From Syncephalis fuscata S228 (taxonomy: Eukaryota > Fungi > Zoopagomycota): a DNA stretch of 64,000 nucleotides. The stretch covers positions 186,001-250,000 of the forward strand of contig JAHLTZ010000028.1 of assembly GCA_025786725.1 (NCBI GenBank), given 5' to 3'. Both the position numbers and the translations under genes were made by a program. This document shows positions 45,901-53,632 of this stretch, in pieces (position 1 is the stretch's first letter; each line of letters begins with the position of its first letter). Below the pieces are notes generated by a model, which saw only the letters and a program-made list of their open reading frames with translations, was not told where the DNA came from and ran no database searches.

Positions 45901-47692
45901 GAGTCATTGATCCAATAGAGTTAGAGAATACATTGATTCCGTTAACATCAATGATGCCCGGTACAAGTGTATCGTTGATTGTACATGCCGCCAATGCATT
46001 GGGTGAACCGGCTGTACTGGATCTGCCATTAAGAGACGAAGATTTAGAACCGATTGTATTTAGATGTCCATCGAATGCCGATCAAGTATTAGTGCAGTTT
46101 GATATTGTACCCACCTATCGTACGAATGATGAATTATTGGTAGGGCTACTGCTTTAGTGCCTTGTCAACCAGCCAGTGGTGCGGCACTCGCGGATAATAG
46201 TAGTTTGCAGAACTATACCGTGCCGATTATTGGATCACAGCGATTAGATATGCTGGGTAGAGTGAGATTTGAGACAATGCTAGTTCGTCCATTCAGTCAT
46301 ACGAATATGCATATTAATGCGCGTAACACCTACTGGCGATCCATAAGTACCAAGGTAAAAAAGATAATAATAACCAATAATAGGAATATGAATGATGATA
46401 TATAATAGGTTATTGGACATCGAGGGGCTGGTGCTAATCAAGCGGTGACAGGTCCGGCTAGTTTGCAGATTGGTGAAAACACAGTATTGTCGTTTATTAC
46501 AGCAGCATCACTAGGTGCTGAGTATATAGAATTTGGCAAGTAGTAACTAATTGGATGATGCGGATTATTAATGCTATGTTTAGATGTTCAATTGACCAGG
46601 GATTTGGTACCGGTTATTTATCACGATTGGACGGTTACAGAGACTGGTTTGGATATTCCAGTTGGCAAGTGTACATTGGAACAGTTTATGAGTATTCGTC
46701 CCCATGATGCATCTCTACGTAGTCCGCGTACATCACCGCCTAATAGTACAAATCATAAAGGGGCAGCGGCCCGAGTATTTGCAAAGTCACTATCACAAAC
46801 ACGAATGATGCATCGTCTTTATCGGCATCAGCATCGTCAACGGTGCCATCATCGCCGGCCACTTCAGATACACCGAGTGCGCAATTAATGCGTATGGAAC
46901 GATCAATGAGCTTAACAGAAATTCGTCGAGCTAATCAACGGGCCAAAGAGGATGAACATCGTCGTATGTTGGCCAAATCGCCACCACCAGGCAAGGTTAA
47001 AGGCAATAGTTTTGGCACTATTCAGGCACCCTTTGCCACTTTACAAGAAGCACTAACGGTAAATAGCTGACTAAATAACTACTAGCATGGCACTAACCAT
47101 AATGAATGTATTGTAGCAAGTACCAAAGACCACAGGATTTAATATTGAAGTCAAATATCCTATGGTCGATGAAGCGGAGCCTGACCGGCTACGTCCAATT
47201 GATTTGAATACGTTTGTTGATCATGTTCTCAATTGTGTCTATACACATGCTGGTGACCGTAATATTCTATTCTCGTCGTTTCATCCGGATATCTGTCGAT
47301 TACTATCGCGTAAACAGCCCAATTTCCCTGTCTTCTTTTTAACAGATGCAGGTGTTTGCCCAATGGCTGATTATCGCTGTATGAGTGTACAACATGCCGT
47401 TAGATTTGCTAAATCGGCCGATCTATTAGGCATTGTTACTGTGTCGGACCCGGTAGTGGATGCACCTCGACTAGTACGCGCTATTAAAGAAACTGGCCTA
47501 CTGCTATTTACCTATGGTAAACGTAACAACGATGTTACGGCAGTTCGTGTCCAAGACAATACGGTGTGGATGCCGTCATTGTGGTAAGTAGTAGTAGTAG
47601 TAATTAGTATTACTATTATTAATAGTTAATTAAATACTAACATTTGTATATAGGATAAAGTGATGCTAATTCGTAAAGGATTGCAGAATTAG
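42913..47692 (+). CDS. GDE1: Glycerophosphocholine phosphodiesterase (SPX-ankyrin-GDPD), multi-exon; about 3 frameshifts
   Basis: SPX start MKFGK...VPEW and GFDKILKKFDK; ankyrin repeats; GDPD motifs VIGHRGAG, GENT, EFDVQLTRD, IEVKYP, FSSFHPD. Confidence 0.94.
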
Positions 47693-48629
47693 AAAGATAC
47701 TGGGTAGGATTTATACTTTTACTATTTAATCAGTATTAATCATTTAGATTAGAAATGGATTAACATCGTAAAGTTTATTTCATTTAATAAATTAGCTATA
47801 TTTTAATGCATATCAGTATATTATTATTGTTTTAAAGCTATGATGTGTAGATAGAGGTGTTTAGAAAAAGTATGCTTTATATAGTATATTGTTGTACGAT
47901 TCAAATAAATAGTTATAAATAATACTAGTGAAAAGATAATATTTTATTTAAAAGAACTGTGATCGTATGTGCATTATATTAAGCATATGTTGTCTGTATA
48001 TTTTAATGTAGAAATATTGTATATTATCTAAAATTTGTGGTCAGTTATACTTTTAGCTCAGTTTACGGCATTGTAAAATAAACTAGTTGCAACATATTAA
48101 TAGTTACAAATAAAAAAGTTGGTTTTATTCATTATTATTGCTAATTAAAGGAAACTAAGAATAAATATTTAAATAAATACTGTTATTGCTTTTGCTTTAA
48201 TTAACAGAGATATGTTTACTATTATTTTATAGTAAATATTAGTATAAATAAAACTTGCACTGTGTATATAGTTAATTATATGGTGGTAAATGGCATGAAA
48301 ATACTTGCTATTTCGATGGATAGTTGTCTATTTATTGTTATAATTAGGCATATGTTATCATTAATATACTTGCTTAATTACACGGCGAAGCAATGATATT
48401 AATTGCATAGTAGATATCACGTGATTATAATACTGTAATTATATATTATAATAATGTTATTTGCACAGCTGCTTATAAAAACATGAACAAGTTATATGTG
48501 CCACGTTATCATGTTAACAAAAAAGCTTAAATTAGATGCATAGAAACGGGTGTAAAATGGTCCCGAAACTCCGGAATGAATCGGCGCAGCTAACTAAATG
48601 GGGTATAAGGGCATATCAAAGCAGCAGTC

Positions 48630-48801
48630 TAATTGGCCAATCGATTTTGCACCCTGATATCAGCCAGTATCGTGCACTCGATGACGACTATATGTCTCGG
48701 ACATGTTCGGAGTAAACCAGCCATTTATGGTAATTTGCCAAGAATCCGCCGATGGTATGAACAAATGTCCGCATCCTTCCGTCGTTTTACTGCTATATAA
48801 A
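48630..48801 (+). promoter_or_regulatory. Pol II-type promoter (CCAAT near 48637; TATATAAA 48794-48801) followed by a pyrimidine-rich leader
   Basis: TATA followed by a CT-rich tract (48810-48960) like the 5' ends of neighbouring genes, but no convincing CDS follows. Confidence 0.45.
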
Positions 48802-48967
48802 CAAGCCTTGCCCCCGCCTCCCTCAGACTAGCCAGCATTTCTTTCTTCTTCTCTTTCTATCTTTCCTCGCTCGATACCACACTCCTTGCTCATAATATTA
48901 TTTCTTCTTACTACACCTTTACTCATTCGCTGTCTCCTCATTCCAAGATTGTCGCTTACTATTTTAC

Positions 48968-49820
48968 ATACTTAAGCTAAGTAATTGGTGTGGGTGGCGC
49001 AAGGCAGCGATGCCTTTTGACTTGCGATGGATAGCGCTCTGCCAGATATATAGTATAATAATACTATATAATAACTAGCATGTATTTTGACATGCAACAG
49101 AATGTGTTTCTGTATATCGCAGTCAACTGGATAGCTGTTTATTGTCCATTTAAGTTTGCTAGTGCTTGCGGATACATTGGTGGTGCTTGTTGGTATAGAC
49201 GCATCATCACAGCCACAGTATGTCAGATACTGGCAATATCTGAATACTGTGTTTATGTTGATATATTGCGCCACTAGTCTCACACATGCATGATTACTTG
49301 AAAGTGAATGATGATATATGTGATTCATATACACACGCACCTCATTTATTGACCATACCTGAGACGTGTGGTATATGCGGTACGGTATATTTACGGGTAT
49401 ATTGTCCATATATTGCACCCTCACAGTTGTAGGTGTGCGGCTAGTCTGGTGTGCGGGGTAGTGAATATGCTTTTTACGATGATCAATAGGCGTTAGAAAT
49501 CTCCATTGCGGTAGCCAAGTACAGGCTGGTTGCAAAACGCTAGTGATGAGCGATTGCAAAGTCAGGGGTTACTTGGTTCTAACGCCTAGCGATTTGGCCG
49601 GTATCCGTGATGCCCGTACCTAGTACTTTGGTATTTACGAGGACCGTTTCAAGTATTATTGATGCGATTGCTCCATTGGCATACTTGCTATATCGGTTCA
49701 CACGACAAATTGCTCATACTGTTTCAATAGATATATATCCAGTAAATATTTAGATTCATCAAGAACAGGACCACAAGACGCCACTTACTCATTTGATTTA
49801 GTATCGTATTGGTATTCAGG
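48968..49820 (+). ncRNA. Candidate long highly structured ncRNA (unknown family)
   Basis: At least 9 nested long-range helices plus local hairpins, many G-U pairs valid only on the + strand, a GCGA tetraloop, and paired 5'/3' ends. Confidence 0.55.
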
Positions 49821-49979
49821 TAATTATTCTATTAAATAAACATACACATTTTTTCTTGCAAATATCAATGCATTACAGCTGATTACGTTTAATGCAACTA
49901 CATCGCGCTATTCGTGTTAAAATGATACCAGTGATTTATTTAGTTGGTTGTTTTATGTTTGTTAAATCTATTACATTTA

Positions 49980-51165
49980 TATTAAACAGTTTATTAAGCA
50001 TTTATTATGATTTAAGGGTCAAATGACTAGCATTTACATACTTAAACTGTACATTTGTTCTATTGAACAAGATGATGGGTGGTGAGTGACATCAGTCATC
50101 AAATACTCATCATTGTAGATTCATTATCCAGTATGCATATATACTCTATTTACCTATATTATTCCCATTCTATCGTACACTATTGCATATTATTTATATC
50201 ATATTGAATACATTATATTGGATATAGCTTTAAATAAGTATAGTTTAATGAACACAATAAGCGAAATAAATTGAACTTTACTATTAATGTATCTAGAGCC
50301 AAACGGACAACGTTTCTGTACAGCTCACCGCTTTTACATAATAAAGCAATAGAATATTATAAACATATATAGACTAAAGTGACGATTAGCTGTGTTGAAG
50401 TTACTGAGTATATAGATTGACAAGCGAGATTAGTTGAACTCTATCAATAATACAGCTAGAACCAAAAGGACAGCTGCAATAGATAGCACGTAGCTATTAG
50501 ACAATAAAACAACAAAACAATATGGCGAATATACAGTATTGAGCGACGATTAGCTGTGTCGAAGTTATTGAGCATATATGCATAATCAATGACCGACATT
50601 AGTCGGCATTTATTAATAATAGTGCTAGAACAAAAATAAAAATAGCACTGGATAGAGGAAAGCTAGGCGAGTATAGAATGATACATAAAATAATAAATAT
50701 ATGGTAAGAAAGCATATAAAACGATGTTAAAGTTATAGTGCATATAATGCAATGAGGAGAATGAATAGAGTATATTGGAACATATAAACAATAAAATGGG
50801 TCTAGTGTATCATAGAACGGTATATATTAGTGTGGAACAGAATGGGAATGATATAGGTGAATAAAATATGTACGTGTACTGAGTATATGCATATTGATAA
50901 TAAATCTACAATAATGAGTAGTTTAAACTTTAATGTTATTCACCACCCATCATCATGTTTAATAGAACGAATGCGCAGTTCAACTATGTAAATGCTAGTC
51001 ATTTGACCCCAAATCACACTAAATGTGATGATGTGGTGATTAAATAAAACTCACCACTTGGCCCCATGTTCAATAGAACAAATGTGTAGTTCAATTGCGC
51101 GAGTGTTATTAAAAATAGTCATTTGGCCCCTAAATGACATTAAATGGTTAATAAATTGTTTATGA
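49980..51165. mobile_element. Foldback/MITE-like non-autonomous element with about 190-bp imperfect inverted arms
   Basis: 50008-50200 is the reverse complement of 50828-51016 (e.g. GGGTCAAATGACTAGCATTTACATA / TATGTAAATGCTAGTCATTTGACCC); a second partial arm at 51060-51165; internal direct repeats. Confidence 0.55.
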
Positions 51166-51238: not shown

Positions 51239-53276
51239 TTATAACATGTATGCTTCGTATAAGCCGCCGTCAGTCACACCAATTCGACAAACGACGGTAC
51301 TTGATACGTGATATTTAGAGCGGGTTTCTTCTGAATTGTCTTCTGCGATTAATGCCGATTCTCTTTCAATGGGAACTAACGGCATAATTTCTTCGCTGCT
51401 GGTTTCCTCGCTGATTCTTTCCTCGCTGATTCTTTCCTCGCTGCTTGAAAGTGGTGTACTAGAAATACATTTTGCTGCTTTGTAGCTAAAACCAGTATTT
51501 GCATCAATAAAGCGACTTTCTCCATTTGCCCCATCAAGTACTGCAAATAGAGAGCCAAGAAAAGGAGTAATTCTTTTGTAAGATTGGCAAGAAATGGAAC
51601 GTAGCGTATTTCCAGTTTGAGCATCCAGCACTTCGAATGCTTCAAAATTATGGACCACAATCATCTTCTCACTGTATAGTTTTGTAATTTTATAACTATA
51701 TATATCCCGGGTCCATAATATATGTCCGTCCTGGCGGCCGACGATTGGTGATAGTTGGTCGTAATCTTTAAAGTCGTGTAATGATGTTGGTAGATTATCC
51801 GATGGATGTTCCTTTAATACGAACAACGACAAAGAAGCGGTAAATGTTAGGTCGTTAATACGTTGTAAACTATCATCTTCCTCGTATACTATGACTAAAC
51901 ACATTTTAGTAGTATATATTTCAGTCTTAACGGTAAGTTTGGGACGATATGGAATCAAAATGTTTCCATATGACAATGGTTTATACCAAAACTGATCATA
52001 CAGTGTATCAAACAAGTACCAACGGAGGCGCTGTGATCGAGTATTGACAGCTTCTACAACCCCTGGTACTACACTCCATAACAAAAACTGGCATCGGTTG
52101 CGAGAAGCAAACTGGATGCTAACAGATGACGGATTCTTGAATATAATTGGAATTGTTATCCAACAACTTTGGCTTACATTAAATACACCAAATTTATGCG
52201 ATTGTCGTGCATCGGTTGTACGTAAAATCATCCAGTCCTTATGAATGGCCTCCAGTTCAGGCCTTTTTTCTAGGCTGGCTTCAGCATTACCACCTAGATA
52301 AATAAGGCTGGGACGCATTCTCCCAGTATACGGCCATACAATAATGGCATGTCGACCGCAAATGCCTCGTTCCTTTGAAGGTGTAGGAACCAATGAACTT
52401 GTAGAAGCTTCACCAAAAGCAGAATAAACCTTAAGCCCTTTATTGGTGTTTAGCTTTCTCATTGCATTTGTATCTACTGTTTTTAATAACATTAGAAATT
52501 ATTATTATAGTGATTAATATTAATTAGCATTACTTACATACTGGGTCGCCAAATAGTACAGATTCTATATCAGCGTATGTATTGATATACAGCTGAGCCA
52601 CAGCAAATCGGGTTGTTCCATAAACGGAGTAAATGGAAGGCTTGTCACCAAGTAATCTTGGCAAAACATTGGTTAATTCTTGTTGAGCCATTATCTTACT
52701 TTGCCCATCATTTTCGCTGATCATATAATGGGCAATTGACCACACTTTTGCCTTTTCTTGATCCCATATCAATGCATTCCAGGGATTTAAATTGACTATT
52801 TCTAGTCGACGACCTTTTCTGACCGATAAATCACATTCTTGTCTGTTGAATCTGCCTATCATCAAGTTGTGCTCCGTCTTCTTGCGTCGTAAATACGCAC
52901 GAAACCATGAAACGGTTTCAAGGCGGGGAATTAATGATTCATCATTAGCATCATTGCCGGTAGTGGCTTCAGCAGATGGTGATCGCTTTCGTTTCTTCTT
53001 ATTTTCACCTGGCACAAGTGGATCTGATTCCGATGTAGAATCAGAAAGCCAAATGAACCATCTCATCCACTCTTGTTCACGTGGATCTCCCAAACAAAAG
53101 TTATCCACGTACTTTTGTTTCCAGGGACTAGAATAGACAGATATCGTTTGATAAACTGTTCTACAAGTTCTTGCAAACGCCACAATTTGTAGCTCATCCA
53201 TATGGCTACATAATTCTAGTATGATGTCAGGAGTTTCCAAAATGCGCTCAATGTTGTTATTGATGTTTGATGACAT
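51239..53276 (-). CDS. F-box-like protein of a lineage-expanded family; one intron near 52480-52540
   Basis: N-terminal PDIILELCSHMDELQIVAFARTCRTVY...W F-box pattern; WFRAYLRRKKTEHNLMIG; NLS KKKRKR; beta-rich C-terminus. Confidence 0.7.
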
Positions 53277-53482
53277 TTTGAGTAAAATTGATTTAAAAAA
53301 CTTTGTTATTTGATAAACAAATAAAGCAATAGCAGTGGATATAGATATTTGAATAATTGGAAGTGTAAAGATTTGGATAACTGCAAAGTAATTTACTTTA
53401 TTTATAGTATGATGGCAACATAATTGCGTATGCATATTGAAGCTCTGTGAATATTGTTCTGATTTATCTATAAATAGTATGC

Positions 53483-53632
53483 CATTGTTCTTTCTTGTTT
53501 GTCAATAGACTGCATATTGTAGTGGCATTGCTCTTTCTTGTTGGTCAATCGATTGCATATTGTAGTGACATTGTTCTTTCTTGTTTGTCAATGGACTGCA
53601 GATTGCAGTGATATTATTCTTGCTTGTTTGTG
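53483..53632 (+). repeat. 43-bp minisatellite, about 3.5 copies
   Basis: Unit CATTGTTCTTTCTTGTTTGTCAATAGACTGCATATTGTAGTGG starting at 53483, 53526, 53569, 53612. Confidence 0.9.

Follow-up and report, generated by a model that had tools for sequence, protein, structure and literature searches.

A probable family of large structured noncoding RNA genes in the genome of the fungus Syncephalis fuscata

Results

The locus and its repeat unit

In a 64,000-nt stretch of the genome of Syncephalis fuscata S228 (contig JAHLTZ010000028.1, positions 186,001 to 250,000, forward strand), we studied a G+U-rich, noncoding block of about 850 nt at 48968–49820, whose minimum free energy fold is deeply nested (−264 kcal/mol). 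The whole stretch is called the window here, and coordinates are those of the window unless a contig is named. An earlier note, made from these letters alone, had taken the block for a candidate undescribed long noncoding RNA (lncRNA). The RNA gene is real, but it is one of at least 72 repeat-borne members of a family. We place it on the plus strand at 48840–49860 (approximately 1 kb), with ends set by the promoter and by an AATAAA signal; it is represented among RNA-derived contigs and contains no conserved open reading frame (ORF). The gene belongs to a 2.7-kb repeat unit on the same strand (48429–51145), which comprises promoter, RNA gene, 3′ flank, and a foldback element. Homology between copies starts at 48429 or 48455 and runs to 51145, taking in ~400 nt of upstream DNA, then the block, the conserved 3′ flank, and the foldback. 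The closest copy of the unit, c201b, is inverted and lies 19 kb downstream on the same contig (C201:253083–255799, corresponding to window coordinates 67083–69799, beyond the window). It is 98.75% identical over the unit and 99% over the RNA block.

The long-range helices that had been drawn for this block are present in it: the eight that we checked pair as described, including 48990–99/49779–88 (10 of 10 positions), 49345–52/49724–31 (8 of 8), 49355–66/49645–56 (11 of 12), 49487–98/49577–88 (12 of 12), 49515–21/49570–76 (7 of 7), and 49159–64/49272–77 (6 of 6). Both halves of 49297–309/49754–63 were also found at those positions.

A family of at least 72 diverged paralogues

A search of the fungus's own genome with the block returned five close copies, among them the inverted 99% copy on C201, one on C363 (69–77% identical), and those on C33 and C343, which match at the two ends only. 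Weaker matches to the promoter led to more distant members, and these, used as queries, to dozens more. From the loci that were fetched we extracted 36 distinct full-length members, which form 11 subfamilies at a cutoff of <90% identity. Members are 519–915 nt long, in classes of about 520, 735, 800, and 900 nt, and sequence identity between subfamilies is 52–80%. In each member, ~400 nt of upstream DNA include a TATA-like box and a CT-rich leader; then come a conserved 5′ domain of ~300 nt, a middle of variable length, a 3′ domain of ~200 nt, and AATAAA.

We built a covariance model (R1) of the 5′ three-way-junction domain from alignment A2, and with it we count at least 72 copies in the 29-Mb genome; the number is a lower bound, because 150 candidates were scored. 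The window gene is the longest and the lowest-scoring member (78.3 bits, E = 1e-14, zero noncanonical pairs). Many dispersed copies had been named beforehand as an observation that would speak for a repeat and against an RNA. The copies do exist, and yet the RNA stands, because it is the copies that supply the covariation described below. A degenerate-motif scan of metagenome contigs gave zero matches, which is uninformative, since the pattern used fits close relatives only.

Pairing is maintained on the plus strand while the sequence drifts

A consensus structure was derived with RNAalifold from a MAFFT alignment of the 36 full-length members. It gives the family core 68 pairs, and at 26 of these both partners have changed in a compensatory way. 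The two partners form a pair in 96.1% of the alignment cells, versus 28%–50% when partners are slid by 1–3 columns. Cells changed on both sides number 169, whereas shuffling gives 64 ± 7 and none of 500 shuffles reached the observed count; the covariation score is 0.403, versus at most 0.125 in the controls. Several positions display three to five different Watson-Crick pair types. Compensatory substitutions maintain pairs beyond control levels, as is generally asked of a structured noncoding RNA.

The fold is also restricted to one strand. It includes 611 G-U cells versus 45 A-C cells, so that 96% of the cells are paired on the plus strand but 72% on the minus strand. Once the variable middle is removed, the consensus folds at −27.9 kcal/mol with 66 pairs on the plus strand and at −2.4 kcal/mol with 18 pairs on the minus strand; the near-invariant AATAAA, also on the plus strand, is a further sign of orientation. 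The family therefore bears out what had been proposed for this copy, namely, a plus-strand RNA structure whose G-U pairs work on that strand only. Since pairing is kept, with compensatory changes and tolerance of G-U, while the sequence drifts to ~52% identity, selection acts on the fold of the plus-strand RNA.

Folding energies of the single sequence are much less telling. With 20 shuffles per strand, 48968–49820 folds better than its shuffles on the plus strand (z = −2.83), as the earlier note had expected, but this does not single out a strand, the value on the minus strand being z = −3.99. Because z is modest on both strands, thermodynamics alone neither proves the structure nor picks the strand; single-sequence folding z-scores are a poor discriminator here.

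Architecture of the core and the expansion arm

The elements of the core, all on the plus strand, are given here in the coordinates of the window copy. The closing helix P1 pairs 48976–48987 (the GCTAAGTAA.. motif) with 49706–49719 (alignment columns 45–57/891–905); five of its 10 pairs show compensatory changes, with up to five pair types per position. This is the closing helix that the family conserves, instead of the one previously proposed to join the ends (48990–99/49779–88), which does pair in this copy but finds no support in the family (75% paired, below the shuffles). At 49001–49016 lies the hairpin AAGGCA-GCGA-TGCCTT (columns 68–87); all subfamilies have a hairpin here, in a shifted register. 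It is followed by the 5′ three-way-junction domain (49014–49129), identified by the R1 match and by covariation, in which a closing helix (49017–26/49118–26) encloses hairpins at 49047–70, 49075–98, and 49104–15.

A second long-range helix pairs 49170–49180 with 49659–49669 (columns 257–267/841–851) and encloses the variable arm. Four of its pairs have compensatory changes, and it is weak in the window copy, with two mismatches and several G-U pairs. The helix 49193–204/49255–66 (spanning 49193–49266; columns 284–296/404–417) is capped by a 15-bp hairpin at 49214–51 and has five pairs with compensatory changes. A 9-bp hairpin suggested earlier at 49178–209 competes with this conserved helix and is discarded. 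The conserved 3′ domain (49659–49834) is recognized by nhmmer profile matches in all members and by the family alignment.

As a separate observation, the loop of hairpin 5 (columns 128–136 of alignment A3; window 49055–49062) reads ACUAGA or UCUAGA in eight of the 11 subfamilies. The CUAG within it is self-complementary and may be a kissing-loop or dimerization site; it is absent in the c201, C363/C33, and C157 lineages.

Between the strands of the second long-range helix, the window copy carries a clade-specific arm of ~390 nt (49267–49658), a nested hairpin with its apex near 49545 and the apical loop GUGAUGA. Judging from the alignments, the long nested hairpin of the earlier note is this variable arm in expanded form. 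Its length is 280–390 nt across the c201/C363/C33 clade, ~210 nt in the 735- to 800-nt classes, and 0 nt in the 520-nt class. When the arm was aligned across the c201, C363, and C33/C343 lineages, we obtained 83 consensus pairs, 20 with compensatory changes, and this covariation supports the nested helices 49487–98/49577–88 and 49515–21/49570–76 as well as the apical hairpin. The ~210-nt arms have covarying hairpins of their own. The arm matched no other gene of this genome.

Promoter and 3′ signals

Upstream of the gene, the promoter-like region 48455–48837 (plus strand) is conserved in the alignments and appears untranscribed, RNA-contig depth being zero over 47835–48836. It is 87%–97% identical to the C363, C33, and C343 copies and 68% identical to distant subfamilies; among close copies it is better conserved than the RNA body (69%–77%). 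The region has CCAAT at 48637–41 and the TATA-like TATATAAA at 48794–801. The CT-rich leader (48838–48960) contains the probable transcription start, and coverage by RNA contigs begins at 48901. We aligned 560 nt of upstream sequence from representatives of the 11 subfamilies and observed a conserved TATA-like (T/C)ATAA(A/G), then a pyrimidine-rich stretch and the leader; the pyrimidine-rich block 3′ of the TATA-like box is kept in 11 of 11. The gene thus has a TATA/CT-leader promoter of its own, as previously suggested, with core elements conserved across all subfamilies.

At the other end, AATAAA (49835–49840, plus strand; alignment columns 1034–1040) is a near-invariant poly(A) signal, found in 36 of 36 members, and it would explain the 3′ end. 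The earlier note had instead placed this end at a terminal splice donor, CAG|GTAATT. The motif is present (GTAATT at 49820–49825, plus strand), but conservation of its GTA across the family is partial, the RNA contigs show no joint at this site, and the near-invariant AATAAA follows that GT by ~15 nt in the members. The promoter signals, together with AATAAA, lead us to infer transcription by RNA polymerase II (Pol II).

Evidence of transcription

The expression data come from X1, the one public run with this sequence, kept as unstranded contigs. The run represents RNA, because its contig for the neighboring gene GDE1 lacks two GT..AG introns (47058–47115, 58 nt, and 47583–47652, 70 nt), spliced out with zero mismatches, and because coverage of the AT-rich spacer and promoter (47835–48836) is zero. 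A 583-nt contig aligns to 49116–49693 with a k-mer depth of 153, versus 103 for the GDE1 contig, and a second contig aligns to 48901–49001 and 49078–49114. The longer contig has the five 1-nt insertions of copy c201b and a few other changes. Expression is therefore shown for the c201 pair or its allele in another strain, and not strictly for this exact copy. With this qualification, the claim that the RNA is transcribed is borne out. Breaks between contigs fall at the start of the 5′ and 3′ domains shared by the family, as expected when transcripts of paralogues are assembled together; contig ends, therefore, do not map the ends of the RNA. An intron of a 5′ untranslated region can be ruled out, since the contigs show no splicing within the body or at the GCTAA|GTAATT site.

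The joint of 49001 to 49078 in the second contig has a depth of ~20 and is 94% identical, and it leaves out 76 nt that are not bounded by splice-site dinucleotides. Its probable source is a related copy without these 76 nt, rather than splicing.

Lack of coding potential and of catalogued RNA families

Coding signal was looked for in a 195-aa minus-strand ORF over the block, and we found that this ORF is interrupted in the 99% identical copy, where no piece exceeds 56 aa. A 65-aa plus-strand ORF meets a stop after 14 codons in C363. Neither gave a Pfam match, and no ORF of 60 aa or more spans the body in the other copies. Between copies there are indels whose lengths are not divisible by three, as well as large deletions. 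We thus reject a protein-coding gene, and the noncoding assignment of the earlier note holds. A short conserved peptide, such as a CAAX pheromone precursor, is ruled out as well, given that the 5′ domain keeps neither an ATG nor a short ORF across the copies.

Nor does the RNA belong to a catalogued family, in agreement with the earlier assessment: a scan of the window region and six family loci with the covariance models of Rfam 15, at E-value cutoffs of 1 and 5, gave no relevant match. The sole match, a chance-level Yar_1 (E = 1.6), is outside the RNA.

Genomic arrangement and mode of spread

Members often come in inverted pairs, 3–40 kb apart and 98%–100% identical (many copies; C201, C157, C317, C328, C101, C349, C35). 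On C313 we found a near-perfect palindrome (C313:15500–22700), whose arms, 99%–100% identical and no shorter than 2.9 kb, surround a 1.35-kb spacer and each carry an inward-facing 523-nt family member; C26:15500–22700 shares it at 99.5% over 7.2 kb. This palindrome could be real or an artifact of long-read assembly. Pairs of copies at ~2.87-kb spacing on at least five small contigs (C216, C220, C225, C206, and C159) suggest that it recurs there. On C343, C33, and C363, three members lie within 3.5 kb. The unit begins and ends at different points in different copies, and its flanks are themselves modules shared over up to 7 kb.

For most copies we read ~1.5 kb per side. No reverse transcriptase or transposase ORF was found in ~60 flanking loci, and neither terminal inverted repeats nor target-site duplications were seen in the short flanks read. 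No direct repeat longer than 22 nt exists in 48500–50300, and copy pairs are inverted, not direct. Downstream from AATAAA, the DNA has conserved sequence that is not poly(A), with no A-tail. The untranscribed promoter is copied along with the gene, and copies form inverted pairs and palindromes, which suggests that the genes are duplicated as DNA. Segmental or inverted duplication fits better than standard transposition, because no long terminal repeat (LTR)-type repeats, A-tails, terminal inverted repeats, or target-site duplications were seen.

Several known kinds of element were accordingly set aside. Variable boundaries, flanks made of shared modules, and the lack of a transposase ORF in the short flanks read reject a DNA transposon or miniature inverted-repeat transposable element. 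An LTR element or solo LTR is rejected by the lack of LTR-type direct repeats in 48500–50300 and by the inverted orientation of the pairs. Retroposed RNA, as in short interspersed elements (SINEs), is rejected by the 400-nt untranscribed promoter kept in all subfamilies and by the missing A-tail. A Fanzor omega-RNA is ruled out, as there is no TnpB-like ORF beside any copy in the ~60 flanking loci.

The repeat unit terminates in the foldback element (49980–51165; no strand assigned), which is heavily represented in RNA contigs. Foldback-related modules also lie 3′ of the RNA gene in the other subfamilies examined (C33/C343, C363, C317, and the short class). The element has by far the highest RNA-contig depth of the region, up to ~830, with joints between opposite strands. 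It is a candidate multicopy hairpin-forming transcript, and as a source of small RNAs it is a better candidate than the RNA gene.

The two 2.7-kb copies on C201 are convergent, with an F-box-like gene and a gene for a PKA catalytic subunit in the ~16 kb between them. Flanked as it is by inverted copies of 98.75% identity, this segment is a ready substrate for inversion by recombination. Further along the contig, C201:255983–256282 is a promoter-like fragment, 69%–73% identical to the family promoter and head-to-head with the promoter of c201b; then come ~500 nt, and then pieces of 3′ flank and foldback. It could represent a family member that has diverged strongly or lost its inner part. F-box-like ORFs are frequent neighbors in the ~60 flanking loci. 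They adjoin members of three subfamilies (window 51239–53632; C317; C354/C328/C234/C304), in tandem, divergent, or convergent orientation.

Discussion

We consider it probable that 48840–49860 (plus strand) is a Pol II-type gene for a structured noncoding RNA of ~1 kb, the longest and most diverged of at least 72 paralogues, which is constrained by its fold and is part of a promoter-RNA-foldback module that multiplies as DNA. The RNA core is held by the closing helix between its 5′ and 3′ parts, the three-way junction, and the second long-range helix bearing the expandable arm, and this arm would behave like an expansion segment. Genes would multiply as DNA together with their promoter and adjacent foldback, through inverted or segmental duplication in repeat-rich regions. 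The RNA itself may serve as a fold-dependent scaffold, probably bound by protein, and our best guess is a ribonucleoprotein (RNP) scaffold.

Several points weigh against this reading. The comparison spans the paralogues of a single genome only, and their demography resembles that of selfish repeats, with one subfamily present in many near-identical copies and the older ones few and diverged. The RNA contigs differ slightly from the window copy and resemble its inverted copy or another strain, so that expression of the exact window copy is not proven. As the contigs are unstranded, the strand of the transcript is inferred, like its start and its 3′ end. The single-sequence z-score is weak (−1.4 for a 523-nt member). 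The consensus was derived from the same alignments that were used for counting, and the MAFFT alignment is imperfect. Shuffle counts overstate significance, because paralogues are related by descent; the slid-partner controls address composition and relatedness, not circularity.

Among other explanations, a non-autonomous mobile or selfish element, with a fold needed in cis for its own propagation (for instance, in packaging, dimerization, or reverse transcription by the enzyme of another locus) and with no host function, seems to us unlikely, although it is the one to take most seriously. The copy number, the transposon-like age structure with at least 12 near-identical short copies on many contigs, the conserved ends with a variable middle, the dimerization-like CUAG loop of most subfamilies, and the foldback adjoining the gene in the subfamilies examined would all suit it. 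It does not account well for an untranscribed promoter duplicated with the gene, the absence in the DNA of a poly(A) tail after AATAAA, the lack of flanking LTR-type direct repeats and of reverse transcriptase or transposase ORFs, or the differing boundaries with long shared flanks, which fit segmental duplication better. In favor of the structure being instead a by-product of composition or shared ancestry, in decaying repeat DNA with incidental transcription, the G+U-rich composition lets shuffles fold well too, and kinship among paralogues inflates the shuffle statistics. But the slid-partner controls retain both composition and relatedness, and with them pairing falls to 28%–50% and covariation to a quarter; together with the three to five Watson-Crick pair types at several positions and a 14:1 excess of G-U over A-C, unexpected without selection on the RNA, this makes such an origin very improbable, marginally more so than the small-RNA precursor discussed next.

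A long-hairpin precursor of small RNAs (hairpin RNA or microRNA-like RNA), arising from an inverted DNA duplication, would explain the long, imperfectly paired arm of the window copy and the fact that both strands of 48968–49820 fold better than shuffles. We regard it as highly improbable, because the family fold is multibranched and strand-specific and can do without the arm, which the 520-nt members lack; in addition, the arm resembles no other gene in the genome. The longest inverted repeat measures 17 nt and the consensus folds on the plus strand only. A simple inverted-duplication hairpin locus is thus rejected, and the earlier statement that the arms are unlike a DNA inverted duplication is upheld. 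A family of regulatory lncRNAs controlling neighboring multicopy genes is a poorer candidate than the selfish element, though a better one than the small-RNA precursor. It would build on the F-box-like ORFs beside members of three subfamilies, an association that may reflect no more than the background density of such genes, and has a precedent in the GC-rich ncRNAs of Plasmodium falciparum (PMC9262227). However, orientation and distance relative to the F-box-like genes differ each time, and downstream from c201b the neighbor is the PKA gene instead. To a telomerase RNA, with which the earlier note chiefly compared the block, or a telomerase-like RNA with a spliceosomally cleaved 3′ end, we give practically no credence. 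What recommended it was the length of the RNA, its Pol II promoter, the long arms, and the GT lying ~15 nt short of the end. Against it stand a copy number of at least 72, with the copies diverged, the AATAAA, which would account for the 3′ end, and the lack of a match to any Rfam telomerase model at E up to 1–5. Moreover, no 7- or 8-mer of (CCCTAA)n occurs in the 36 members, with the caveat that this template type is assumed and the telomere repeat of the genome may differ. A search of the genome for four units of TTAGGG gave no array, although such a search skips simple repeats, and the starts of contigs that hold family copies showed no telomere repeat.

Returning to the fold-constrained RNA family, one genome's diverged paralogues (52%–80% identity) suffice to define a multidomain fold without cross-species data. 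The result is a testable model, with helices, junction, expandable arm, and conserved loops, and a covariance model to apply to related genomes. If the RNAs act in trans, they would point to an unknown RNP with an unusually large, fast-evolving repertoire of RNAs; if in cis, they would define a repeat of a new type, with selection acting on the structure of its RNA. More tentatively, at somewhat less than even chances, we propose that these RNAs form a class of large structured RNA not previously described in eukaryotes, a fold-constrained scaffold of 0.5–1 kb with an expandable arm and dozens of rapidly diversifying paralogues, each with a Pol II promoter, which might be either an RNP subunit whose specificity is set by the arm or a selfish promoter-RNA-foldback DNA module. 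To our knowledge, large structured RNAs supported by covariation are rare in eukaryotes beyond the classical RNPs. The case also calls for caution: what looks, within 64 kb, like a striking "unique lncRNA" can turn out to belong to a family with many dispersed copies.

Comparison with known systems

A full-text literature search returned no comparable fungal family; the closest paper reportedly describes short conserved structures in fungi (PMC8216456). The present family resembles fungal telomerase RNAs in its Pol II-type signals, conserved core, long fast-evolving arms, and end-to-end pairing. Those of the TER1/TLC1 type are single-copy Pol II transcripts of 0.5–1.3 kb with a template and an Sm site, unlike the at least 72 copies found here, which have a canonical poly(A) signal and no CCCTAA-type template. 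GOLLD, ROOL, OLE, and HEARO are bacterial or phage RNAs of 500–900 nt, usually one per genome and in some cases tied to mobile DNA. Like them, this family is recognized by covariation only and is multistem with variable insertions; unlike them, it is eukaryotic, with Pol II signals and dozens of paralogues in one genome.

With SINEs, retrozymes, and the nonautonomous LTR elements known as terminal-repeat retrotransposons in miniature (TRIM) and large retrotransposon derivatives (LARD), the family shares high copy number, subfamilies of different ages, conserved ends, and a variable middle. It differs in having no internal Pol III promoter, poly(A) tail, target-site duplication, or LTR pair, no ribozyme match in Rfam, and an external promoter duplicated with the gene. 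Hairpin-RNA and small-RNA loci have in common with the window copy a long imperfect arm, but differ from the family in its branched, strand-specific fold, in the absence of the arm from short members, and in its lack of an extended inverted repeat.

RUF6, the GC-rich ncRNA family of P. falciparum, consists of short RNAs. It has 15 members, described as affecting the expression of var, rifin, and stevor genes, with predicted Pol III transcription and relatively conserved sequence (PMC9262227). The likeness lies in multicopy, sequence-related ncRNA genes scattered in repeat-rich regions and among multigene families (PMC9262227). Unlike RUF6, however, the S. fuscata family has Pol II-type promoters, lengths of 520–915 nt, divergence down to ~52% identity, and a fold supported by covariation.

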